Shown here one piece after another: positions 44,301 to 64,000 of a stretch of DNA of 64,000 bases. Origin of the DNA: Saccostrea cucullata. Taxonomy: Eukaryota. How positions within the stretch are numbered: the stretch's first letter is position 1; every line of letters starts with the position of its first letter. The stretch covers positions 496,001 to 560,000 of the forward strand of contig NW_026925910.1 in the NCBI RefSeq assembly GCF_032062105.1, in the 5' to 3' direction. Position numbers and translations under genes: made by a program. The notes beneath the pieces are model-generated. The model was not told where the DNA came from. It saw nothing but the letters and a program-made list of their open reading frames with translations, and did no database searches.

Positions 44301-46925
<2,625 letters not shown>

Positions 46926-47844
46926 TTCTAAAACAAAATGTCACCATTAAATCCCTCGCAAGTCAGAAAAACTTGTGGACAATCAAAATACTTCTACCTT
47001 TCAAGATCAGCGATTTTGTATATATTTATGCTAGGTTTTACTAATCCTCCTTTATTCATTCACCCAACACATTCTAATTTGGTTAGAACTAATAAGGCAC
47101 AATGTTGGATTCAAGGGTTGCAATGATTCCATTTTTAATAAGCTGAAAAAAAATTATGCTTAAAGTCAAGTGAAATATTACAAAATCTTGAACTGAGAAT
47201 CATATATACATGTATTTAATCTGAATTAAGTTCCCCCTCTAAGTTTTTCTTTAATAAAATTTAGATATTTCATGAAAGTTCTGTTTGTCATGTTTAGGGT
47301 CTTGGGGTCTCCACTACCTAGAACTCAACATCCAGTGTGGCAACTTCTACTTTAAAAAATAACTAAGGTGAAGTCCACAGCAAAAAATTTAATTAAATAT
47401 GTTTAGGTAGTTCATATGGGGTCCAGTTAAGATGCATATGGCATGAGTTGAAGCAGGCCTACCCAACCTAAGTTCACCAATAATTTAACAGTTAATCTTC
47501 TATCAACCTTAACGTTTTTAACATTTTCATTGAAATATGCCTATAAGATATGTCAATAATTCAACTAAAATGTATTCTCCTATGCCTCAATACATTTTCA
47601 GTTGACAATTCACAGCTGAGAAAATGCCGGCAAAATGCCGGTAGTAACATGTTCGCTATCTAGGCCCTATCTGAATTACTTACAAACTGATATATATCTA
47701 AATTTTTGATTACTTACTGTCTATTTTAATTTAAGTTCGTTCTTTTCTCGGTTTCCTCCAAACTTCGACTTATATCTTTTCCACCTGTCAAACAGAATGC
47801 CAAATACTTACACGCGTGTACTTTCTTCTTACAGCACTACCAGT

Positions 47845-47995
47845 CGTGTCGAATTTTCATTGGCTACCGTAATGTTCACTATGAAATTTCATTGGATAAA
47901 CTTAACATACTCCCATTCATATCTCAAGGACACGTATAACTTCGACAAACTACGTAAATCAAGAATATCGAGAATTGCCGAGAACAATCGAGAAT
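47845..47995 (-). promoter_or_regulatory. BiP promoter: ERSE-like element, second CCAAT box and HSE-like arrays
   Basis: Minus strand 47863-47845 reads CCAAT-GAAAATTCG-ACACG (ERSE consensus CCAAT-N9-CCACG, one mismatch). Second CCAAT at 47895-47891. nGAAnnTTCn next to both boxes. GAA repeats every 10 bp at 47972, 47982 and 47992. Confidence 0.6.
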
Positions 47996-48850
47996 TTAAA
48001 ATTTCATCAGCAAAAACTGTTTACATATGATTTCAAAGAATCATGTCCAAGTTTCATTACGTAATTGTTATAGCTTATCTAATTTTATTCTACATTAAAA
48101 CTTGTCTTTACTTTCTTAGTTCGTTGTACGTTGTTGATTTCGTATTTAAGTGCAAAATGTTCCAGAAAAATTACTGTGCATCAAGTTTCATTATAATAAT
48201 GAATTATTTTTTGCAATACGTTTGTAAAAAAAAATATTTGTGTGCTTTCTGAAGACTTCATATGAAAATAAAACATGTTTACGTATTTATTCTATAGTAC
48301 GCCTTAATCTAAATAAGCAGTTCGTGACTGCGCATGCCTTCCACACGAACACGTGCTCCATTCCAGGAGCCTCACTCCAGACGGGAAGGGTAGGACGAAG
48401 ATGTATAGATGCAGATATGCATCCTTATCCTTGTCCTGGTGCGTGTAACCGTAAAGTATGTATTCTCTGTACTTTTTTTTTTTTAGGATTTCAATATTTT
48501 AGTTGAATGACAATTGGCCACATACCTTTCTTCGAAAGATGAATAGAGCTAGAAACTTATCAATGCATTTTTGGTAGAGCAGAGTTCTTTTAAATGTGAA
48601 TTGTTGAATATCGGTCCAAACCAATATTTAGACCATATTGATACCCAATAAGGCCTTTTTCAAGTGTTGAAATCTCTTGATTTAGCTATAGATTCAAATG
48701 AGCTTAATTAAAATTGTATACAGTGTTACACAAAAAAAGTCAAATAGACAAAGCCACAAGTAGTAGACAGTAGTTCAGTTGGAAAGAGGAAAAAGAATTC
48801 CAAAGAGATAGTCTAAGCATTGTTGCTTTTGAACATTAAGCAAAACTTTA

Positions 48851-49257
48851 AACAGGTTAGGACCACTCGCCCAAATGGGATATAATAGTCCATTTGGGAT
48901 ATAATATCCCAAATGAGCCTTAAATTTACAGTGCAAAAATTGAAATTAAATTCGCAACAGGACACTTAAAAAGGAATAACTTTTGATTGACAAGTTTTGC
49001 TGTATGCCCATTGTTTAGGAGATTGATCCCTCGGAAGTTCCGCAACTTCTTGTGGATCAATCTAACAAACAGTAGGGTTGCAGAAAAACTTGCTTACCAA
49101 AAGTTATTCCATTTTAAGTGTTTTGATGCGGATTTATGATATTTATTATCAAAATAAAAATTTTCAATTTTTGCACAGTAAATTTATAGCCCATTTGGGA
49201 TATTATATCCCAAACGGACTATTATATCCCATTTGGGCGATTGGTCCCAACCTGTTA
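48851..49257. mobile_element. ~400-bp near-palindromic MITE
   Basis: AACAGGTTAGGACCACTCGCCCAAATGGGATATAATAGTCC... mirrored by ...GGACTATTATATCCCATTTGGGCGATTGGTCCCAACCTGTT over almost its whole length. Confidence 0.85.
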
Positions 49258-49393
49258 AAGATGTATTTCCATTCAGTGAATTGGTAAGTACACAACCTTG
49301 AGTGTGTGTTGAATATAGTGAGTGAGGTAAATCAATATACTCTTATTACATACAGTTTTAATGGTTAATGTTCATGGAAGTAAAAAGACCAGA

Positions 49394-49475
49394 AGAGTGC
49401 AGATGATGAGATCATAGTTCATCAGAAATTAATTGAAGACCACAAAATGTCTTTCGCTTCTAGCTGATGCACTCT
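49394..49475 (+). ncRNA. SNORD80: Box C/D snoRNA SNORD80/snR60/Z15 family (double guide, 28S)
   Basis: 8-bp terminal stem AGAGTGCA/TGCACTCT; C ATGATGA; D' guide CATAGTTCA + CAGA; C' TTGAAGA; D guide GTCTTTCGCTTCTA + CTGA. The guides pair with 28S UGAACUAUG and UAGGGGCGAAAGAC. Confidence 0.9.
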
Positions 49476-50027
49476 AAAATCTGAAAAGGGCATCCCATTT
49501 CACTGACATTACATATTCTGTTTAGAAAGATATATGAATCATTTCAGGGCCCAGTGAATGCAATTGTCATTTGAATTGATGATTGGACAACATTACCAGA
49601 ATTTGAAGAAAGTAGGGTAAGAATGGTATTTCTTTAAAATAAAAAGTGTATTCCAGTGCTTTCCGTAAGAACCGGCCACCGGCCAAATTGACCACTGCAA
49701 ATGACAAAAATGCCATTTTGAAATAAAAATTTATAGTCAGGTCCACAGATTCTGTTCATAAACCTCAGCCCCTAGTTTGTTGCAATTTTTCTCTAGCCCT
49801 TTACTTTGTAATAATGGGAAAACACTGGTAGTCATTTAGAAATTAAAAATTCAAAGCTATTTTTGATGTATCTTGGTATTCTTGATGTATAAAATTGTAA
49901 TAAAAATCATGGTTGAACTTTGTTGAGCCAGTTTTATTTTTGATGAAAAAGTTTGCAAGTTCATTCTCAGAAAGTAATTATTTTGATTTTAAACATGCAG
50001 CATCTGTAGATATAGCATAAATATAAT

Positions 50028-50127
50028 GACAGGTAGTGATGATGAAAGCTTTTTCTCCATTCGCGGTTTCCACCAGAGATTTTTCGATGATGGACCAATC
50101 CTTCCTTGGATGTCTGAACTACCTGTT
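50028..50127 (+). ncRNA. SNORD14: U14 snoRNA copy 1
   Basis: C GTGATGA (50036); domain A CATTCGCGGTTTCCACC (pairs 18S GAAACCGCGAAUG); domain B CCTTCCTTGGATGT + D box CTGA (pairs 18S ACAUCCAAGGAAGG); terminal stem ACAGGTAGT/ACTACCTGT. Confidence 0.95.
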
Positions 50128-50611
50128 GTTAAAATATATATATATATATATTTACCCCTTTTTGATAACATTAACTCTTGTGAAAATAAAATTTATGACA
50201 GTTGGTATCTCTGTTATAAAGTTCATTTTCAAGTTTAAAGGGAACAAAATAGATAATTCGTAATTGCTGTTCTGTTTATAATGTATTTTTTTTAAACGTA
50301 AGGAAAATCTAGCAAATAGGAGGACCAAGATCACTTGTGACAAAATTTCTTTTATGACTTTCTAATGGACTAATTTCAAATATATATGTTTAACTACAAT
50401 ATTAATGTTCCTTACCACCAGAGTTTTGGGGGTTATGTTAGTTTAATAGATAATCTTAATGTTTAATAATTTTCTAATCTTATACTGTAATCATTGCAGT
50501 CTACGCTGAAGTTACCTTCTTCGGTCAGTTTTAATATCGAGTGCCACTGTGGTGGTGTTGGAAGGGAAAGTGGTAAGAATATTCTACCAAAGTGGAAATT
50601 TTTTTAACAGT

Positions 50612-50681
50612 TGTCAAAGGGATGAAAGCTTTACAAATTACTGATTTGTGATGTTTGTATTATTAGCTCTATCTGATTGGC
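50612..50681 (+). ncRNA. SNORD44: Box C/D snoRNA SNORD44-like (18S Am166 equivalent)
   Basis: Variant C GGGATGA; D' CTGA; C' GTGATGT; 11-nt guide TATTAGCTCTA + T + CTGA, complementary to 18S UAGAGCUAAUA; stem GTCAA/TTGGC. Sits in a 185-nt intron (50573-50757). Confidence 0.8.
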
Positions 50682-50857
50682 CTCGATGCAGTATTGTCTG
50701 AAAAGCAAGCAAACTCTTCAGTGCAGTTAATTAATATCGTGTGAAATTATTTTGCAGGAAAAGGAGAAGAAATTATTCAATCTATAAACAAGGTAATTAT
50801 TTGAAAAGTTACAAACCAGGAGAATTATTTCTTGAAGTCAATAACATGATTAAGATT

Positions 50858-50956
50858 TCAGGTAGTGATGATGAAAATTTTTTTCTCCATTCGCGGTTTC
50901 CACCAGAGATTTTTCGATGATGGACCAATCCTTCCTTGGATGTCTGAACTACCTGA
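50858..50956 (+). ncRNA. SNORD14: U14 snoRNA copy 2
   Basis: Near-identical to copy 1; stem TCAGGTAGT/ACTACCTGA. Confidence 0.95.
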
Positions 50957-51987
50957 CTTCAAAATCAAATGGAATTTTTTTTTTTACTAGATTTATAGTT
51001 ATACTATATTAAAATGATCAATAAATGAGTCTGATATAGTGTCAATATATAGCCAGCCATTTAACAGATACAGTAAAAGTTATAACGAAGTCACTGGGAC
51101 CTATTAAATTACTTCCCTATATCCATGAATTTGCAATGTCCGTGTTCGCACTAACCGAGTTTTACTGTACCCATATTCAAACTTGTATATGAAAAATAAT
51201 CAATTGATCTGGTTTGAAAAATAAGCAAGGAATACAACATTTTAAAGGGAATGAAACAAATCCTTTCCAATTTAACCTAACAGTGAAAAAATTTTGATTT
51301 AGGCATATCATCGGCACACTTAATTATTATCGTACCTTATAAACGATTGCATAATACTTTTTCTTTGCACTATATAACCCATAACCAGCATTGTTTCGCA
51401 TAGTAATTTACAAAGGATTTATATACGTAAAAAAAACAATTAAAAAAATTAAGATAAGACAGGCTAAATAGCTGGGTATGTGAAACATTTTGACAGAAAA
51501 TTCAAACACAGTTGAGTAAATAGTTCTTCCGTCGTTCCGACTGTCCTCGATTTCTTTTTTTTTCATCGAGCATGTTCATGATGTTGGTATCTTTATTATC
51601 GATGCACAGAGTTTCTTGGACTCATTTTCGAGGCAAAATGTAATTCCCAAATGCATTAATGTTTTTAAAAAATTACGTTTACTATGCAGAATTATCATTC
51701 ATTGTTACCTGCTAAAAGTGATGAAATCTAGTATTGTTATAAATATATATAAATTTTAAATTGTTTTATTAAGTAATGTGTACTTAAGAAAATAAATATA
51801 ATTTTACACTTAAGATTAAAAATAAACAAAATAATTCTTCTGCCGGAAATATCTGAAAAAGTTTTCCACAGCTCTGCCTGAACCCATTTTAGTCTACTCA
51901 TTCTTCATAACTGTTCCATTTGATCTTGAATGTATTGTTACAGTATTAATAATGCACTGAATGATTAAAAATCTTATTGTACTAATA

Positions 51988-52061
51988 AATGAATGATGAA
52001 AAATCTTGTGGGAATCTCTCTGACAATACAATGAAGAGATCAATACAAGTATCTGACACTT
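51988..52061 (+). ncRNA. SNORD79: Box C/D snoRNA SNORD79-like (28S guide)
   Basis: C ATGATGA (51993); D' guide GTGGGAATCTC + T + CTGA, complementary to 28S GAGAUUCCCAC; C' ATGAAGA; D CTGA (52053); 82 nt upstream of the acceptor tattgcag. Confidence 0.85.
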
Positions 52062-52186
52062 GAAACTTCTAGTATATAATAATCAGATGTCTATTCTGTT
52101 TCTTTTGCTCATCAATTTGTATGTACATTGTATTGCAGGTTTCGGATAGAATAATGTAAATACTCACCAAAAGAATAAGGACTTGG

Positions 52187-52992
52187 GCCATCCTTAAAAA
52201 ATTTATTTTTTGCGGTAACACGCCTCATCATTTTAGATGTGAGTAGGTAGGTAGGCTTTTTTTTTTTGAGACAAAATGTCAGAAATAAATTTCGATTATA
52301 TAGAGGTATTAAGTATGTCTTAGATTTCACCTTACTAATCAAACAAGAAAATTAAAGCATTCTAAATGAATTCAATCTTTTATTGCTCAAATATCGGAAC
52401 ACATCAGTTCTCTTTAGGCAAACTTTTTCAAAGAAAGTGACTCTCATCAGCCACGTACCTCAAATAACTGACTCCACACTAATCTAGTGTTTCGGGGGTG
52501 TGATATATATGAGGTTTAAGATTTTGATAGTTTATTAATTAGCTGCAAATTCATCATCCCACATGGAACTGTTGCCACCAATTTGATATTTTAAACATCA
52601 TACCATGTATCTGTAAGGTGGAACTGACGCACGATATTTTGGACTAGCAATTAAGATGTTTTTCCTTTCAAATTCACTGTAACTGACAGAACTATAGAGT
52701 CAATATTTCCCGCAACCTTCGCCTACGCCATCTCTAAATTTGTAGATCACAAAAACATTTTAATAGTACTTGGGGAAAGATAAAGCGTCGGTGTAACCGA
52801 GGCGTAAAAAAAATATATCAATCGGATAAAAACGGCATAAGTGCAATGGAGACGTAAAAAAATATTAATCGGATAAAAACGGAAAATGGATACATAAAAA
52901 AAAAAAGATTTTTGAACAGATAAAAAAAAAATCCAGTCGGGTGGTTTTGGACAGAATAATGTAAAAACTCACCAAAAGAATAAGGATGGCCT
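52187..52992. mobile_element. Non-autonomous DNA transposon inside the snoRNA host gene
   Basis: GGCCATCCTTA ... TAAGGATGGCC termini. The right-end sequence agaataatgtaaa..ctcaccaaaagaataagg is duplicated at ~52149-52180. Confidence 0.6.
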
Positions 52993-53193
52993 TGGCTGCT
53001 AGCTATTTACACAAAAGGTACTGGTACATTTTTTCCACATGTTGACATGAAAGGTAGAAAAAAACGAATTTATGAAATTTCAAAATAACAATTGCAACTA
53101 CGTAATATCTAGGTCGTGTAAATTATCATGAAGTCATTGCTGTCTAAAATTGGTACTATAAAGTTGAATGGAATAACCCAATGAAAAGCTTGT

Positions 53194-53289
53194 AAGGCAG
53201 TGATGATGAAAGTTTTTTCTCCATTCGCGGTTTCCACCAGAGATCCGTCGGTGATGGACCAATCCTTCCTTGGATGTCTGAACTGCCTT
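53194..53289 (+). ncRNA. SNORD14: U14 snoRNA copy 3
   Basis: Domains A and B are identical to copies 1-2. The terminal stem AAGGCAGT/ACTGCCTT shows a compensatory T-A to C-G change. Confidence 0.95.
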
Positions 53290-53982
53290 CTAAAATGATC
53301 ATAACTTTTAAAACAAAATAGTGAAATAATTTGCATTTCAAGCATGTTTGAGTAGGTCAATCGTATTTTTTCAGAACTGAAAAACCTTTCAAAATGTACT
53401 GAAAGAAATCAATTTTATGCTTCAATGCTGTAGAGTACAAACAAGCAAGATATTTACAATTTGGAACAAGACAATAAAATACTTCTACAGATCACTTAAA
53501 GTTCTAAGTTAAGAATATCATACTTCCAATTCTTAGTTTTAAGGAATCTGAGAAAAAAAATGAGAAATGTGTATCTGAAATAAAATTGGTGGTAAAGATG
53601 AGTTTAATTTATACATATTAGCTTAAGTGATGTTAGGATGGTAGTAAACCTTGATCAATTTTTCTTAACTAATATTTTGGTCAATACAATCATGATTGTC
53701 AGCTTAGTAGAAATGTGTTGTACTAGAAGAATTTAAAAGTCACTAGAAAGTGGATAATTGATGTTGCATTTCAACCAATAATAATAATATAGTCAGCTAA
53801 TCATAAAACATGACCTCATCTATATGTTTTTCAAATGACGATCAGTTACTTATTAGAGTTGAAAGCTGTGTAAGAGTGCATTACACTAAATGTTCAGCAC
53901 TATAGGGTTTATTCAGACATGCAAGTTCCATAAATACAAGTCTTAAGGTAGGAAATTATGAAAAGTGAAAGATTTTGTGTAA

Positions 53983-54042
53983 AGTAAATGATGATTAGAA
54001 CTTTCAGAATTCCTGAAGAGTTATCTGCGGATATCTGATACT
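53983..54042 (+). ncRNA. Compact box C/D snoRNA, family unassigned (probable 28S guide)
   Basis: Stem AGTA/TACT; C ATGATGA; D' CAGA; C' CTGAAGA; guide CTGCGGATAT + CTGA, complementary to conserved 28S AUAUCCGCAG. Confidence 0.7.
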
Positions 54043-54550
54043 GGACACAAAATGCTAGTCAATTGAAAACTGCTTTACCAATACTATATAGATGGATAGC
54101 TACTCTTGATTTAAAAACTTTAATTCAGTTTAATATCTACCTCATACTCATTCAAACTACCATAAAATATCTTGACAGCAATTTTGACTATTTTGTAGTC
54201 TTATTCAGTTGTTGTATGTGTCAGGGTATAGCTCATTGAAACCAAATTATGCCAAATAAGCCTTTAGATAACATTCTGACTAAGTCCATATCAGTCCTTG
54301 TTGAAATAGACATGTATTTAGGGGAGATTATGAAAATGGCACTAAGGTCTGATCATTGTAAACTTGATTATTTGAAGTGAAAAGATTTTGCAAAGATGAA
54401 GGATCATTGTAAGAAATTATTAGGACATTTTTCTAGCAAGCATGAATAACATTTTAACCAAAGTTGTAAAACTATAGGATGATCCAAGAATTTTTCATTG
54501 TAATATTAATTGTTAAAAAGATGAAAAATCATATGTATAAGATCTGGAGC

Positions 54551-54625
54551 TGCACAGTACATGATGAATTTGAACTCTCTCACTGATATTGGTGAGGACA
54601 ACATAATATCTGATCAAACTGTGCA
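54551..54625 (+). ncRNA. SNORD81: Box C/D snoRNA SNORD81-like (28S 5' region guide)
   Basis: 8-bp stem TGCACAGT/ACTGTGCA; C ATGATGA; guide TTGAACTCTCTC + A + CTGA (pairs 28S GAGAGAGUUCAA); C' GTGAGGA; AATATCTGA D box as in vertebrate U81. Confidence 0.9.
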
Positions 54626-55112
54626 TTAATCACATATCTGTAAAATAGTCGGAAAATCAAGATTACTGGCCTTTTCTTTATGAAAATCTCAAAATGTCAA
54701 ATTAGCAATGCAAATGATTGAGACTGCCTGTCTTACAACAAATAAGTTTACTTAAGGTAAAGCATCTAGAAACAGTAGGAGGATTAGAAGCTACATGTAT
54801 TTAAGGAAAAAATTCAAAAATTAAGTTTACAAAGACAGATTCTTTGTAATATGTCGATATTTTCAGTATTGGTAGTATTCAAAATTTACCAGACACTTAT
54901 GTATTAAAATATCCTCTCTTCGACTGAAAAAAAAGGTTTTTTAAATAAAGAAAATGTGTTACATTTGTTGTATTGGAAATGAATTGCGCACAACTTAGGA
55001 AATTGATAGTATGTCAAAGTAAATATTCATGTGTATTTTCCCAGTGTAAAGACAAGAGAATAGCCATGAATGCTTTACAAAATTTAAAATATTTTGTAGG
55101 AATTAAATGGAT

Positions 55113-55195
55113 GGCCTGCAATGATGAAAAGAAGATTAAAATGTAGAAAGGGACATATGAATCTCTGTGATATTCTCTTCTTTCTGAGACAGGCT
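55113..55195 (+). ncRNA. Box C/D snoRNA, SNORD74-like (possibly degenerate)
   Basis: Stem GGCCTG/CAGGCT; C ATGATGA; GTAGAAAGGGACA + T + ATGA (D'), one mismatch to the expected 28S UGUCCCUAUCUAC; D CTGA. Confidence 0.55.
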
Positions 55196-55612
55196 ATCAA
55201 TTGTAGGGGACTTCATCCACTTGGTTACTAATTATAAAAGACACATAAATACTAACTGTATAGAGACTGGCCATCAATTGTAGGGACTTCATTCAATTGG
55301 TTACTAATTAAAATAGACACATAAATTCTAACTGTATAATTATGTTCAATCAATACATAGGCACATATTGTCTATGAGATGTATCAATAAACTGAACTAG
55401 TTATTTGGACTGGATATTGAGTTAATTCACAAAAGAAAACAGGGGGTGATGGATCATAAAATTAATATCTTTTAAATAAATTGACTATGAGATGTATGTC
55501 TCTCGACTTCAATAAACTGATAAACTGAACTAGTTATTTGGACTGGATATTGAGTTAATTCACTAGGAAAAAAAGGGGGTGGTGGGTCATAAAATTAATA
55601 TCTTTTAAATAC
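55195..55612. repeat. Two local tandem duplications (~75 bp x2 and ~132 bp x2)
   Basis: atcaattgtaggg..acttcat..ttggttactaatta..gacacataaat..taactgtata occurs twice; ataaactgaactagttatttggactggatattgagttaattcac...cataaaattaatatcttttaaata occurs twice. Confidence 0.8.
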
Positions 55613-56713: not shown

Positions 56714-59639
56714 GGTTTAATTTTAGTCATATAGTATTCTTTAAAGGATTAAATATATTTCAAGCAGCATAATTTGTATTTTGTTGACTTGATCAATACT
56801 GTTATGTTTAATCTGAAGTCGTGGTGATAAACTGCTGCAGTTTCTACATAACAAGAAAATTTAAAAATATCAGCAAGAAAATTGCATGGTAAAGTTTTTA
56901 TTTTCATCTGAATCATAAAGCATCAACTTTTAACAATATATAAAAACATTACATTGGTATTACTTTTCATGCTTTTCAGAAAGTAAAAAAAAAAAAAAAC
57001 TAGAGAAAGAAGAAACTATAGAAAATCTATAAAGAAAAAGATGCTTGACAATGAAATTTCTTTGCATGCTTCTCACAGATGAGAAACTTAGGATAAAAAC
57101 GAATTTCTAGAAAACCTATGTGTACTAGCAATTCTTTTTCAAGTATAATCTTTACTTATTATATGACGGACTACACCTCGAATAATATAACACTTCTGCT
57201 GTAAGCCAGGCTAGCTTAGTGGGAGCATCTGACATTTAATAACAACAAATAATAAACAGGCATACATTAATGTGCATGTGAATAATGAAATACTGCAATG
57301 TTTTGTTAACTATACGTTACATGCTATGCATTATATCCCTATCACAGACATTAAAAACCGCCCAGGAAAAAAACCATAGACACGTAACTATGGAAAACCG
57401 CCCAGGAAAAAACCATAGACACGTAACTATGGAAAACCTGTGTCCGTCGCTATGTAAATAATGTCTCAATGGAGAATGCCGGACGTGCATTCGGTGCAGT
57501 ACTTGGTATGCATAAACACCATAGATGTACATGTACAATAGAGCGAAAAACATGCCAATATTGTTGTCAAAATTTTAAACATAAACGTATTGAAATACAT
57601 GCAAATGTTGGTAATATTCTAAACATAAACGTAATATATAAACAAAAACACGTGTGTGTTCTGCGGAGCACTGGCTTAGAATGTTCCAACACCTCAAAAA
57701 AAAAAAACGCCTTCTCATTGGCCTTACTTTGGCCACGATTACCATAAACAGGCATTTCCAATAAAATACGTTCCTATCATACAACGTTTTCCCGCTATTC
57801 TAGGAAACGCGGGAAAACTCGACTACAAATGGTGTATACCATTAAAAAATGTACAAAAGAAAAAATTCTGATTCATTGTACAGGTATTATTTAAACTTTA
57901 AAGTTTTAGTGTTTTTTAATAACATTTAAGTTCTATTAATATAGAAAAAAGAACATCGGTTGCATAAGATAAAAATAAATAAAAAATTTAAGGTCTTGCT
58001 CTCTCTATTATTGACTTTGTGTAGCGATTAATATTTTTTCCTCTTAAAAAAGTAAAAACATGACTTTATTAAAATGTTCCGGCCTCCCCAATTTATAATA
58101 GTGAGAAGAAGGAGTTTGATATTTTTGCATGTACTGATGAACAAAATTTAACAAAAATAAAATAGATGAGTTTGTTTGTTTTTCTTCTATTCAGAAAATT
58201 TACTCACACAGAGGATATTTTTAAGCAATTATTCAAAATGACCCAGCATGTCTATTCCTTCGCTACAATACCTCGAATATACAGTGTTAATATTATTTTC
58301 AGTAAATGTGCAACAATCGAACCATGTACAGGTATTTACATAATATGCACCTGTACACCTCAACCCTACTCAAAGACTTGTGCATATAAAGCAAACATAT
58401 TTTTCCAGTAAGTAGGCATTTCAGCAATTTTGTAAACCTGACCCATAAAGTGGTAATAAATATGCATTAAAAATGCATGTATTAGAAACACTGAAAAAAA
58501 GATATTGCATGCTGTACTCTGTAGTCCTTTTCTAACTTTACGGTATATGTACTGATCAACGGGGGGAAAATCAAATTCATGGACAAGGAGAGAATATAAT
58601 GTTGGTTAATTTTTTATATATACATAATGAAAGTCTACTCTAGTAGAAATCATTTGAACTTAATAATCACCTTTCATTTGATGCCACCATACAATCATCA
58701 ATGCCAAATAAACAAATTGCCAATAAAATTTTATATGTCTGAGAATAATATATATATATTTAAAGATGCTATTATGTTGTCTTAGAGGATTTATATACTT
58801 TTCTATTATGAAAAGAACATTTTTTACTTAGTGTCTTAGTGTATGAAGTCTTGAGCAGATGGAGGGAGGCATTTAAAAAAAATGTAAATTGCTTAACTAT
58901 GAAAGTGAATACATGGACCTCTGTAATATCTTCTTTTTTTTTTGATGTCATATCCATCCTGTATTTGGCAAATATTAGAAGTATTTTAACAATAAGATCA
59001 AATGATCTGAATAAGAATTTATTTTAAAATGTCATGATTTATTTTAAACTCATCCAGATTTTAAAATTGCAAAAATATTGATCGCAGAGCAGTCAAAATT
59101 TAAGTAATAAAATGGAGCAAAAAAAAATCCTAGACGTTCAAATTAAGAATTTTTGCATCGATTCATATGCCAAATTATGGCTTAATATATATATATATTG
59201 CTTCGTTGAAAAGAGAAATTTTGTCCACATTTAAATTGACAAAAACGATGACGTTGTAGAACCTCATAGATCAGCAGCTAAAGATGCATGCAATTGTGTG
59301 TTTTACTCGGTAAAATTCCTGAAAAACTCTGGAATAAAAACATATACGGTATCACAAGCAAGTCGTGTATTTTCGTGTAAATAGTAGAGGCGGTATTTGA
59401 TTGACTGAAACTGAGTATTTCGAATGAAGACACCGTTCTATGAAGAAACGGTTTGAATGGAAAAAATATTCTGAACAAAAACTTTTAAAAGCTGGAACGT
59501 AATGGAATGGAAAGACATAGGCATTTCAGAGTTGCTGATCTTGTGAAAGCACATTAAAGTTATAAAGGAAATTAAAACATTGACAAAGGAAACAACGAGA
59601 GAAAAATTATTTAAAAGTGAAACTTCACACAATTTTTAT

Positions 59640-61922
59640 CCTTAGACATTGCAAACTTCAGGTATTGAGGGATGTTTTTATGGCCTTTGAGATATCTCCT
59701 GCCATTTTGTTCCTCTGAAAAATGAGAGGAAGGGGACTGATCAGTCCTTTTTACAACACACCGTTGAAAAAAAATTAAAATCTTAGAGACTAAAACACTC
59801 AGAAAACTAATTTGATGTAGTATAAACCGATAAATGCATCAAAGTAAAAATTAAAAAAAAATATATACTACATTTAGCTTCATAGATAAACGATTAAAGA
59901 ATAAAAATCAGAAAGAGAGAAAAGATGAGAGATAAAGTATGAAATAACGTCCGTAAAAAAGTATGTAAAAAAAAATCTTAACTTTGAAAAAGAACTCTTT
60001 ATGTAACTTAGCCCCCCAAAATTATTAAGAAACAGAAAGAAGGAAAGTTTATCTTATAGAAAGGGGGAAATAAGAATGCACAACTTTATTAAAAAAATAA
60101 ATAAGTGAAAGAAAGAAGAAAGAAAGAATATCTTTGTTTAAAAATATCATACATTGGGTAAATTCTGTGGTTATTTTGACTGCCATATTTGATGCCAATT
60201 GTTAGGCTTTTCTTTGTATAGATAAATATGACTACGGGATATTTCGTCCATTTGATGAACACATGGGGCTCACGGCCGATGTGACCAGCCCAAGAGACTC
60301 CACCTAGACACTTGATACTACTTTTTAAATTTCTGAGGCTCCGTCTTTTATGCTCGTTTCACTAACTTGTATTGTCCATACGTTTTCTAATGAGACCGAC
60401 CACTGTTCGCTATCTCTAATAAAGTTTTTGTAGAATTTTGCTGGCTTATAAAAAAAAATCAAACTATAATATTGCTATATAAATTAAAAGAAAAAAAATA
60501 CGGAAAATGGCAATCAATATAAATCACAGAAACAACCCATTATATGATAAAATTAAAAAAAAAAAAAAAACTATAGATAATAAAAATAATGCTGTCTTAG
60601 TAAAACTGTATCCGAAGATAACATCTGGGGGTGTTTTTTTTCAGAAAGAATTCAAACATTTCAATGATCATTGCAAAATTGAGGCACTGAGGGAGGTTTT
60701 TATGGCCTTTGAGATATCTGCATTTTTGTTCCTCTGAAAAATGAGAGGAAGGGCACTGATTAGTCCTTTTACAACACACCATTGAAAGAAAACTTAAATT
60801 CAGGGAGACTAAAAAATCAGAAAACTAATTTAATGTAGTAAAAATTGATAAATGCATCAAAAAGAAAAAGGAATAAAATGAATACTAAATTTAACTTCAT
60901 AGACAAAGGATTAAAGAAAGAAAAAGAGAAAAAAGATGAGAGATAAACTATAGAAAAAAAACATCCGTAAATTAAAGTATGTAAAAAAAATCTTAACTTT
61001 GAAAAAGAAAGGAAGATGGAAGGAAAGAAAGAAAAATTTAGAATTCTTTATGTACCTTAACCAAAATAAAAGAAAGAAACTAAGAGAAAGAAAGAAGGAA
61101 GGATTATTTTACTTTAAAGAAAAGGATAGAAAAAAAATTAAAAAAGCACAACTTAAAAAAAACATACAAGGGAAAGAAAGAAGAAAGAAAGAATATCTTA
61201 CTTTAAAAATATCATATATTGGGTAAGTTCTATGGTTATTTTGACTGCCATATTTGATGTCAATTATTCGGCTTTTGTTTGTACAGATAAATTTGACTAC
61301 GAAATATTCCGTCCATTTGATGAACACATGGGGCTCACGAAAGATATTTTGTGACCAGCCCGATGACGTATGACTTTCCTAGACACTTGATACCACTTAC
61401 ACAAAGGGTCCGTGTTTTGTGTTCGTTTCACAGATTTGTATTGACTATAAGTTTTCTAATGAGATGGACCAATGTTCGTTATCTTTATTTCAGTTTTCGT
61501 AGAATTTTGCATGTTTAATAAAAAAAACCCAAAAATTAATGTTGCTATATAAATTGAAAGAAGAAACAAAAAATGGCAATCAATTTAATCCATAGAAATA
61601 ACCCATTATATGATGAAATAAAAAAAATATATAGATGATATAAAAAATAATACTGTCTTAGTAAAACTGTATGCTATGATAAAATCTGTTGATTCAGAAA
61701 GAAGTCAAACCTTTCAATGATCATTGCAAAGTTGAGGTACTGAGGGAGGTTTTTATGGCCTTTGAGATATCTCCTGCCATTTTGTTCCTCTGAAAAATGA
61801 GAGGAAAGGGACTGATCAGTCCTTTTTACAACACACAAATTAAAGAAAAATTAAATTCTTGGAGATTAAAAATCTCCGAAAACTAATTTGATGTAGTAAA
61901 AACTGATAAATGCATCAAAAAG

Positions 61923-61994
<72 letters not shown>

Positions 61995-64000
61995 CTACAT
62001 TTAGCTTCATAGATAAACGATTGAAGAAAAAAAGTAAGAAAGGTAGAAAAGATGAGAGATAAGGTATGAAAAAAAAAACGTCCGTAAATAAAATATGTTA
62101 AAAATTCTTAACTTTTAAAAGAAAGGTAGAAAGAAAGAAAAAAAAGAATTCATGTAACATAACCAAAAAAAAAAATTATTTAGAGACAGAAAGAAGGAAA
62201 GTTTATTTTAAAGAAAAGGGTAGAAAAAATAAGAATGCACAACTTTAAAAAAAATAAATAAGGGAAAGAAAGAAGAAAGAAAGAATATCTTAGTTTAAAT
62301 ATATCATATACTGGGTAAGTTCTGTGGTTATTTTGACTGCCATATTTGATGCCAATTGTTCGGCTTTTCTTTGTACAGTTAAATTGACTACGGGATATTC
62401 CGTCCATTTGATGAACACATGGGGCTCACGGCCGATGTGACCAGCCCACGAGACTCCTCCTAGACACTTAATACCACTTTTTCTAAGGGTCCGTGTTTGT
62501 GCTCGTTTCACAGATTTGACTTGTCTGTACGTTTTCAAATGAGACCGACCACTGTTCGTTATCTTTATTTCAGTTTTCGTAGAATTTCGCTGGCTTATAA
62601 AAAATCAAACAATAATATTGCTATATAAATTGAAAGGAAAACAATACGGAAAATGGCAATCAATTTAGATCACAGAAATAACCCATTATATGATAAAAAG
62701 AAAAGAACTATATATAATAAAAATCATGCTGTCTTAGAAAAACATCTGTTGATTCAGAAAGAAGGCAACCCTTTCAATGATCATTGCAAAGTTGAGGTAC
62801 TGAGGGAGGTTTTTATGGCCTTTGGGATATCTCCTGCCATTTTGTTCCTCTGAAAAATGAGAGGAAGGGGACTGATCAGTCCTTTTACAACACACCATTG
62901 AAAGAAAACAAAAAATTCAGGGAGCCTAAAAAAACTCGGAAGACTAATTTGATGTAGTAAGAACCGATAAATGCATCAAAGCGACAAAGGGAAAAAAGAA
63001 TACTACATTTAGCTTCATAGATAAACGATTAAAGAATAAAAATAAGAAAGAAAGAAAAGATGAGAGATAAAGTATCAAAACGTCCGCAAAAAAAAAAATC
63101 TTAACTTTGAAAAAGAAAGATAGAAAGAAAGTAAAATAAGAATTCTCCATGTAACATAACCAAAAAAAAATACTAAAGAGAGAAAGAAGGAAAGGATATC
63201 TTAAAGAAAAGGGTAGAAAAAATAAGAATGCACAACTTAAAAAAAAATAAATAAGGGAAAGGAAGAAGAAAGAAAGAATATCTTAGTTTAAAAATATCAT
63301 ATATTGGGTAAGTTCTGTGGTTATTTTGACTGCCATATTTGATGCCAATTGTTCGGCTTTTCTTTGTACAGTTAAATATGACTACGTAATATTCCGTCAA
63401 TTTGATGAACACATGGGGCTTACGGCCGATGTGACCAACCCACGAGACTCTTCCTAGACACTTGATACCACTTTTTAGATTTCCGAGGGTCAGTCTTTTA
63501 TTTACGTTTCACTGATTTGTATTGTCTATAAGTTTTCTAATGAGACCGACCACTGTTCGTTATCTTTAAATCAGTTTTTGTAAAATTTTGTAGGTTTATA
63601 AAGAAAACCCCCAAAAAACTATAATATTGCTATATAAACTGAAAAAAGGAAAATGGCAACCAATTTAAACCACAGAAATAACCCATTATATGATGAAATA
63701 AAAAAAAATATATAAATAATTAAAAAAGAATAATGCTGTCTTAGTAAAACTGTATGCGAAGATAACATCTGTTGATTCAGCAATGATCATTGGAAAATTG
63801 AGATATGAGGGAGGTTTTTATGGCCTTTGAGATATCTCCTGCCATTCTGTTCCTATGAAAAGTGAGAGGAAGGGGACTGATCAGTCCTTTTTACAACACA
63901 CCGTTGAAAGAAAACTTATATTGAGAGAGACTAAAAATCTCAGAAAACTAATTTCGTGTAGTAAAAATTGATAAATGCATCAGAAAGAAAAAGGAATAAA
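59640..64000. repeat. ~1.0-1.06-kb tandem array (macrosatellite), more than 4 units, continuing past the window end
   Basis: The anchor gggaggtttttatggcctttgagatatctcctgccattttgttcctctgaaaaatgagagg recurs at ~59668, 60691, 61743, 62803 and 63809. Unit 3 has an (AT)n expansion at ~61927-61993. Confidence 0.95.

Follow-up and report, generated by a model that had tools for sequence, protein, structure and literature searches.

The snoRNA cluster opposite BiP

In the oyster Saccostrea cucullata, a 64,000-nucleotide stretch of contig NW_026925910.1 (positions 496,001 to 560,000 of the forward strand; hereafter the window, to which unlabelled positions refer) contains a putative non-coding host gene for box C/D small nucleolar RNAs (snoRNAs), which starts ~600 nt from the 5' end of HSPA5, the BiP gene, on the opposite strand, so that the two stand head to head (Table 1). 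An earlier note on this DNA had claimed about nine plus-strand snoRNAs at 48420-55300, and nine candidates, with their boxes and stems, were indeed found between 48.4 and 55.3 kb by Rfam matches and guide pairing. Their order is U80, U14, U44, U14, U79, U14, a guide from outside the GAS5 families, U81 and a degenerate U74-like copy.

The Rfam matches that the note expected were obtained in part. The three to SNORD14 scored 63.7-65.7 bits (gathering cut-off 64) and that to snR60/Z15, the U80 family, exceeded its cut-off of 41 bits; SNORD81 (E 0.0016) and SNORD79 (32.3 bits) were under theirs, yet aligned over the family guide, and a scallop copy of U79 exceeds the cut-off. Matches to the U44 clan and for the U74-like RNA were weak, and these two were assigned by guide-target pairing. 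Across the whole window, gathering-level matches were confined to this cluster, and a guide scan gave two isolated weak matches outside it.

Guide targets were predicted by applying the D+5 rule to the 18S, 5.8S and 28S ribosomal RNAs (rRNAs) of the same genome, and the guides pair with them at human-equivalent sites (human sites from PMC3511168). For U80/U77, U44, U79 and U81, a guide beside the D or D' box pairs at the rRNA site of the family; U80 carries two, the D' guide directed to 28S A1061 (human Am1521) and the D guide to 28S G1152 (human Gm1612), where the target position itself forms a G.U pair. All three U14 copies pair with 18S rRNA through domains A and B, each over 14 of 14 Watson-Crick positions. 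The snoRNA at 53988-54038 is without a GAS5-family counterpart. Four of the five GAS5 families named by the note are supported by their guides; for the fifth there is a degenerate U74-like copy, whose guide forms 12 pairs and one A.A mismatch, the mismatching base being present in all four 28S copies checked. Its target lies 11 nt from that of U79, the spacing of human Am3809 and Cm3820 (PMC3511168). This copy is not intact in S. echinata and is possibly decaying; no U74 with a perfect guide was found elsewhere in the oyster assembly. We also observed that its 3' end resembles the U81 D guide of snoRNAs on a metagenome contig (L058, 8350-8972 and 5816-6655), in which a single molecule carries the D' guide of U74 as well as the D guide of U81; the same contig has U14-like RNAs with domain A only.

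Eight of the nine snoRNAs recur in S. echinata in the same order and are 91-98% identical, against only 47-71% for the flanking introns; as judged by this comparison of the two genomes, the snoRNAs are under purifying selection. Three further candidates were rejected. That at 51717-51856 has a C box and a 10-nt match to 18S rRNA, but it lacks a D' box, is AT-rich, is polymorphic in the RNA contigs and is absent from S. echinata; the pairing of that at 54219-54350 overlaps its D box. A 44-nt block at 53862-53905 is ~90% identical in S. echinata and has no C/D boxes, and it was discarded as an H/ACA RNA, as the window lacks a canonical H box and the two oysters give different folds.

Table 1. 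Features of the host locus and its surroundings (MITE, miniature inverted-repeat transposable element).
Feature	Positions	Strand	Remarks
HSPA5/BiP coding region	44301..46924	-	head-to-head with host; a 5' exon probably lies upstream of this, with a donor near 47718
Shared divergent promoter region (putative)	47845..48420	.	read from sequence; 76% identical in S. echinata
Probable exon 1	48421..48455	+	pyrimidine-rich start, donor 48456; 76% identical, donor position conserved in S. echinata
MITE in first intron	48848..49259	.	98-nt inverted arms; dispersed repeat
Candidate exon 2 (earlier note)	49261..49283	+	good donor; acceptor at MITE edge; no S. echinata match
U80/U77-family snoRNA	49403..49467	+	Rfam snR60/Z15 58.8 bits; ends 80 nt before 3' splice site
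Exon 3	49548..49616	+	spliced to 50500 in X1 contig and one X12 read
U14 copy a	50036..50117	+	14-nt domain A (18S 82-95); 14-nt domain B (18S C420 = human Cm462)
Exon 4	50500..50572	+	both junctions present in RNA
U44 snoRNA	50619..50676	+	11-nt D guide, 18S A161 (human Am166); 81 nt before 3' splice site
Exon 5	50758..50792	+	RNA; splice sites conserved in S. echinata
U14 copy b	50865..50947	+	Rfam 65.7 bits
Decayed exon between U14b and U79	51189..51224	+	acceptor AG now AT, donor GT now GC; skipped in X1 contig
U79 snoRNA	51993..52056	+	11-nt D' guide, 28S A2655 (human Am3809)
Exon 6	52139..53017	+	interrupted in assembly by dispersed ~800-nt MITE (about 52186-52992); 71 nt in S. echinata
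U14 copy c	53200..53281	+	Rfam match
Ninth C/D snoRNA	53988..54038	+	10-nt D guide, predicted target 28S C2153; 92% identical in S. echinata
U81 snoRNA	54561..54613	+	13-nt D' guide, 28S A394; Rfam SNORD81 34.4 bits
U74-like snoRNA	55121..55187	+	D' guide, 28S C2666 (human Cm3820), one mismatch

A spliced transcript with short, fast-evolving exons

RNA reads were mapped on 48390-54389, where the support consists of one contig from run X1 and one read from run X12, representing an allele ~92% identical to the assembly. The GT-AG splices 49616>50500 and 50572>50758 occur in both, and the contig contains a third, from exon 5 (50792) to exon 6. Exons 3 to 6 are therefore joined in a spliced plus-strand RNA of the kind that the earlier note had predicted, and several box C/D snoRNAs reside in the introns of this one transcript: U14a, U44 and the pair U14b and U79 sit in introns that are spliced out, and the U80 intron is retained in the X1 contig. 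The proposal of one snoRNA per intron fails for U14b and U79, which share a single intron in the sole isoform seen; between them lies a decayed exon for which an intact 35-nt counterpart is predicted in S. echinata. The remaining introns are predicted from splice sites conserved in S. echinata, and the X1 allele appears to be without the MITE of exon 6. The RNA data are thin because the expressed allele is ~92% identical and the exons measure 35-73 nt; as such exons are too short and diverged to map, shallow coverage in poly(A) runs is no evidence that the transcript is scarce. Read-depth peaks at 51079-51124 and 52186-52990 were excluded as transposon reads rather than host transcript.

Comparison with S. 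echinata, exon by exon, gave no conserved open reading frame (ORF), since exon identity is 68-76% and length differences (69/70 and 73/68 nt) break the frame, in agreement with the note's description of tiny non-coding exons without a meaningful ORF. Its exon at 49261-49283, with the peptide MYFHSVNWAQ, is unsupported: it abuts the MITE end and has neither reads nor a match in S. echinata, and an alternative acceptor would leave a 7-nt exon from 49277. Pyrimidine tracts akin to 48421-48455 are found in mussel, scallop, limpet and the hemichordate Glandiceps, and the host may have a 5' terminal oligopyrimidine (TOP/TCT) start. The 3' ends of U80, U44 and U79 precede an acceptor by 80-82 nt, which is the usual spacing for splicing-dependent assembly of C/D ribonucleoproteins (snoRNPs).

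Related snoRNAs elsewhere in the oyster genome

The last intron of Hsc70 (L009/L010, 1501-1595), a vertebrate-like location, gave two further U14 matches, which represent two haplotypes and are longer than the copies in the host gene. Two copies of U76 were located in introns of HSPA9/mortalin (C3323:61535-62326, also C2277). U47 was not found in the oyster genome, a negative of little weight; oyster 28S has a T at the base that U47 targets. We note as a side observation that each of the three constitutive HSP70 genes of this genome is associated with snoRNAs: Hsc70 with U14, HSPA9 with U76, and HSPA5 with the host beside it.

The BiP neighbour and the region between the two genes

The last exon of the BiP gene encodes a sequence 100% identical to S. 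echinata BiP and 92.5% identical to that of Pinctada. Read from sequence, the region between the genes has on the BiP strand a CCAAT-N9-(A)CACG motif (47845-47863) like an endoplasmic reticulum (ER) stress response element, together with an NRF1-like site at 48330 and an E-box, CACGTG, at 48350, and a common promoter may control the snoRNA host and BiP. The neighbours of the locus are HSPA5, C10, eIF3g, MAN1B1 and OSTC. C10 and eIF3g, beyond BiP, have the same arrangement in S. echinata, and OSTC, the next downstream gene found, lies ~23 kb away and is encoded on the opposite strand. MAN1B1, eIF3g and C10 occupy 11055-37766 (and L023); a BiP-MAN1B1 linkage is seen in limpet too, BiP is linked to a Brix-domain gene in starfish and hemichordate, and units of ~1 kb form a tandem array at 59400-64000 and beyond, between host and OSTC.

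BiP-linked loci in other genomes

BiP proteins were used as anchors, and the 10 kb upstream was retrieved in nine named genomes. GAS5-family snoRNAs were detected opposite BiP in S. echinata, mussel, scallop, limpet, the brachiopod Lingula and Glandiceps, that is, in five lophotrochozoans and one deuterostome beyond the window, and none on the BiP strand. The scallop order is U76, U14, U79, U80, U81, U80, U14, U74, U80 and U14, plus others, and that of Lingula U76, U80, U80, U14, U14, U47 and U74, with SNORD47 (57.4 bits, cut-off 50), SNORD14 and snR60 all above cut-off; the limpet has U76, U80, U80 and U44, and the mussel U44 and a U62-like RNA. Glandiceps talaboti has U74 in three copies and then U76, U44 and U47, preceded by a TOP-like tract and an E-box, and its U74-U76-U44-U47 is collinear with the human order, which is U74, U75, U76, U77, U44, U78, U79, U80, U47, U81 (PMC6856654). 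Five of the nine GAS5 families are found in the oyster and seven of the nine at all BiP-linked loci together. The families are therefore not scattered in other lophotrochozoans but recur at the same BiP-divergent position. The union of U14 with a GAS5-type host stands with its three oyster copies, although it is not specific to the oyster, U14 being co-hosted in scallop and Lingula too (2-3 copies). As the earlier note had supposed, a protein-centred annotation misses the locus: the host gene is unannotated in every assembly examined, and no protein gene is annotated there in any positive genome.

In two ENA contigs the BiP anchor gave no cluster within 10 kb. Metagenome contigs have U76-U74-U79 and U74-U79-U14 at intron-like spacing, and fungal-like ones U76-U79-U74 closely spaced. 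Separately, the Glandiceps U76 (L147 minus strand, 5427 nt upstream of BiP) also bears a U24 D guide (28S C1699), a bifunctional, yeast-like U24/U76, and the scallop (L025 minus strand, 3087 and 6737 nt upstream of BiP) has a U14-derived snoRNA whose guide is shifted by three bases (predicted target 18S A423) and which is tandemly repeated along with U14 and a SNORD103-like RNA.

Origin of the host gene

We conclude that the locus is very probably a non-coding snoRNA host of the GAS5/UHG type, transcribed by RNA polymerase II, and that it is probably orthologous to GAS5 of vertebrates. Being common to Lophotrochozoa and one deuterostome, the BiP-linked host, as dated by these loci, predates the protostome-deuterostome split, as the earlier note had suggested. 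Orthology with GAS5 is argued for by the payload, the hemichordate order and the paralogy of human 1q23-25 and 9q33-34. As to payload, five of the seven oyster families are GAS5 families (p ~3e-5 assuming ~100 freely assorting families, a value too optimistic because these families co-travel). Human HSPA5 is located at 9q33.3. GAS5 is located at 1q25 (PMC6789762), and both regions derive from one cephalochordate chromosome (PMC13012124). Because the DARS2/ZBTB37 flanks are not shared and agreement is only at the level of the paralogon, we class the gene as a GAS5-type host and probable orthologue, not as GAS5 proper. The literature yielded no invertebrate GAS5 or BiP-linked host, the coverage of fly hosts being incomplete.

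Several observations weigh against this reading. The host is not between DARS2 and ZBTB37 and shares no vertebrate flanking gene. Its snoRNA order is shuffled among lophotrochozoans: the collinearity with human claimed by the earlier note is partly seen in the oyster but was overstated, as U74 is first in human and last in oyster, and scallop and Lingula differ from human as well. Each host also carries non-GAS5 snoRNAs (U14 and U24-, U62- and SNORD103-like), U75 and U78 were not found at any BiP-linked locus examined, oyster U76 sits in HSPA9 rather than in the BiP-linked host, and no cluster was found within 10 kb of BiP in Pinctada, the starfish Acanthaster or the amphioxus Branchiostoma lanceolatum. 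For the transcript, no reads fell on exon 1 or 49261-49283 among the runs mapped, and U81 and the U74-like copy lie past 54389, outside the read-mapped stretch.

Part of this would fit a real non-coding host that is not a GAS5 orthologue, an old co-travelling U74/U79/U76/U80 module having been captured separately by an invertebrate BiP-linked host and by vertebrate GAS5. snoRNAs move between hosts (PMC3511168), as oyster U76 in HSPA9 and U14 in Hsc70 illustrate; fungal-like contigs, too, have U74, U76 and U79 side by side, the U74 and U79 sites are both guided by plant snoR44, no flanking gene is held in common, and amphioxus BiP has no cluster within 10 kb. We nonetheless consider separate capture unlikely: U44, U47 and U81 co-occur too, the hemichordate succession reproduces the human one, and the 1q25/9q33 paralogy fits one ancestral locus. 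It is far less probable that the snoRNAs belong to several units, to an unspliced polycistron or to a protein-coding gene that escaped detection and holds them in its 5' introns. RNA links exons 3-6 only, the X1 contig retains the U80 intron and the three 3' snoRNAs lie outside RNA coverage, but splice sites are conserved in S. echinata between poorly conserved exons whose lengths differ by non-multiples of three, OSTC is distant and on the other strand, and none of the positive genomes has an annotated protein gene there. That the cluster consists mostly of dead copies or chance C/D motifs is hardly credible; U79, U81, U44 and the U74-like RNA do fall under Rfam cut-offs, but the snoRNAs stand out in S. 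echinata from their diverged flanks, perfect guides of 10-14 nt pair at known sites and the strand controls were empty. Such decay probably applies solely to the U74-like copy, with its guide mismatch and its loss of integrity in S. echinata.

Under the GAS5-type interpretation, the host would be transcribed away from BiP from the shared promoter region, and splicing of its short exons would release introns to be debranched and trimmed to box C/D snoRNPs. The mature snoRNAs would guide 2'-O-methylation of 18S and 28S rRNA, U14 also aiding 18S processing, and the spliced RNA would be a likely disposable by-product prone to nonsense-mediated decay (NMD). In vertebrates, the host may have been kept on the 1q25 copy of the BiP region, with HSPA5 remaining on that at 9q33. 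More tentatively, we propose that ancestral host and BiP shared a bidirectional promoter coupling the supply of ER chaperone with that of rRNA guides, including U14. Molluscs, brachiopods and hemichordates would have retained this arrangement, and in vertebrates a genome duplication followed by reciprocal loss would have separated the two genes (GAS5 at 1q25, HSPA5 at 9q33).

GAS5 is a heavily studied long non-coding RNA (lncRNA) whose published range is 'at least' the jawed vertebrates (PMC4408788). If the orthology is true, it would be among the oldest traceable lncRNA genes, its published ancestry stopping at jawed vertebrates; this would argue that the gene served from the start to deliver snoRNAs and acquired functions of its exons afterwards, and it would be a counter-example to the view that snoRNAs move freely across deep time. 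The conservation of the head-to-head arrangement hints at co-regulation of ER stress and ribosome modification, and BiP is a practical anchor for locating this host gene in genomes.

Comparison with known snoRNA host genes

Vertebrate GAS5 (SNHG2) and the oyster host are both non-coding and multi-exon with short exons, and both face away from a neighbouring gene. They share U77/U80, U44, U79, U81 and, in the form of the degenerate U74-like copy, U74, to which the loci of the oyster's relatives add U76 and U47; the content of GAS5 varies among vertebrates as well (PMC2653536). Unlike GAS5, the oyster host carries U14 and a non-GAS5 guide, with no U75 or U78 seen, its order is shuffled, and its neighbour is HSPA5 rather than DARS2 and ZBTB37 (PMC6789762).

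Non-coding snoRNA hosts are already known in flies and fungi. UHG/SNHG1 and Drosophila Uhg1-8 follow the same expression strategy as the oyster host, although the payload of UHG (U22, U25-U31) is different, and the spliced RNAs of UHG and GAS5 are cleared by NMD (PMC7277114, PMC6954239). Myc targets Drosophila Uhg1, next to whose start there is an E-box (PMC4430873); the E-box of the oyster host lies ~70 nt upstream. The fungal intronic clusters of the UHG-like hosts of Neurospora are likewise non-coding with C/D snoRNAs (PMC2780460) and are set apart from the oyster host by their described snoRNA composition. As for U14, its place in the last Hsc70 intron is the same in oyster as in mammals (PMC7277114), and the oyster has three further, shorter copies in the non-coding host.

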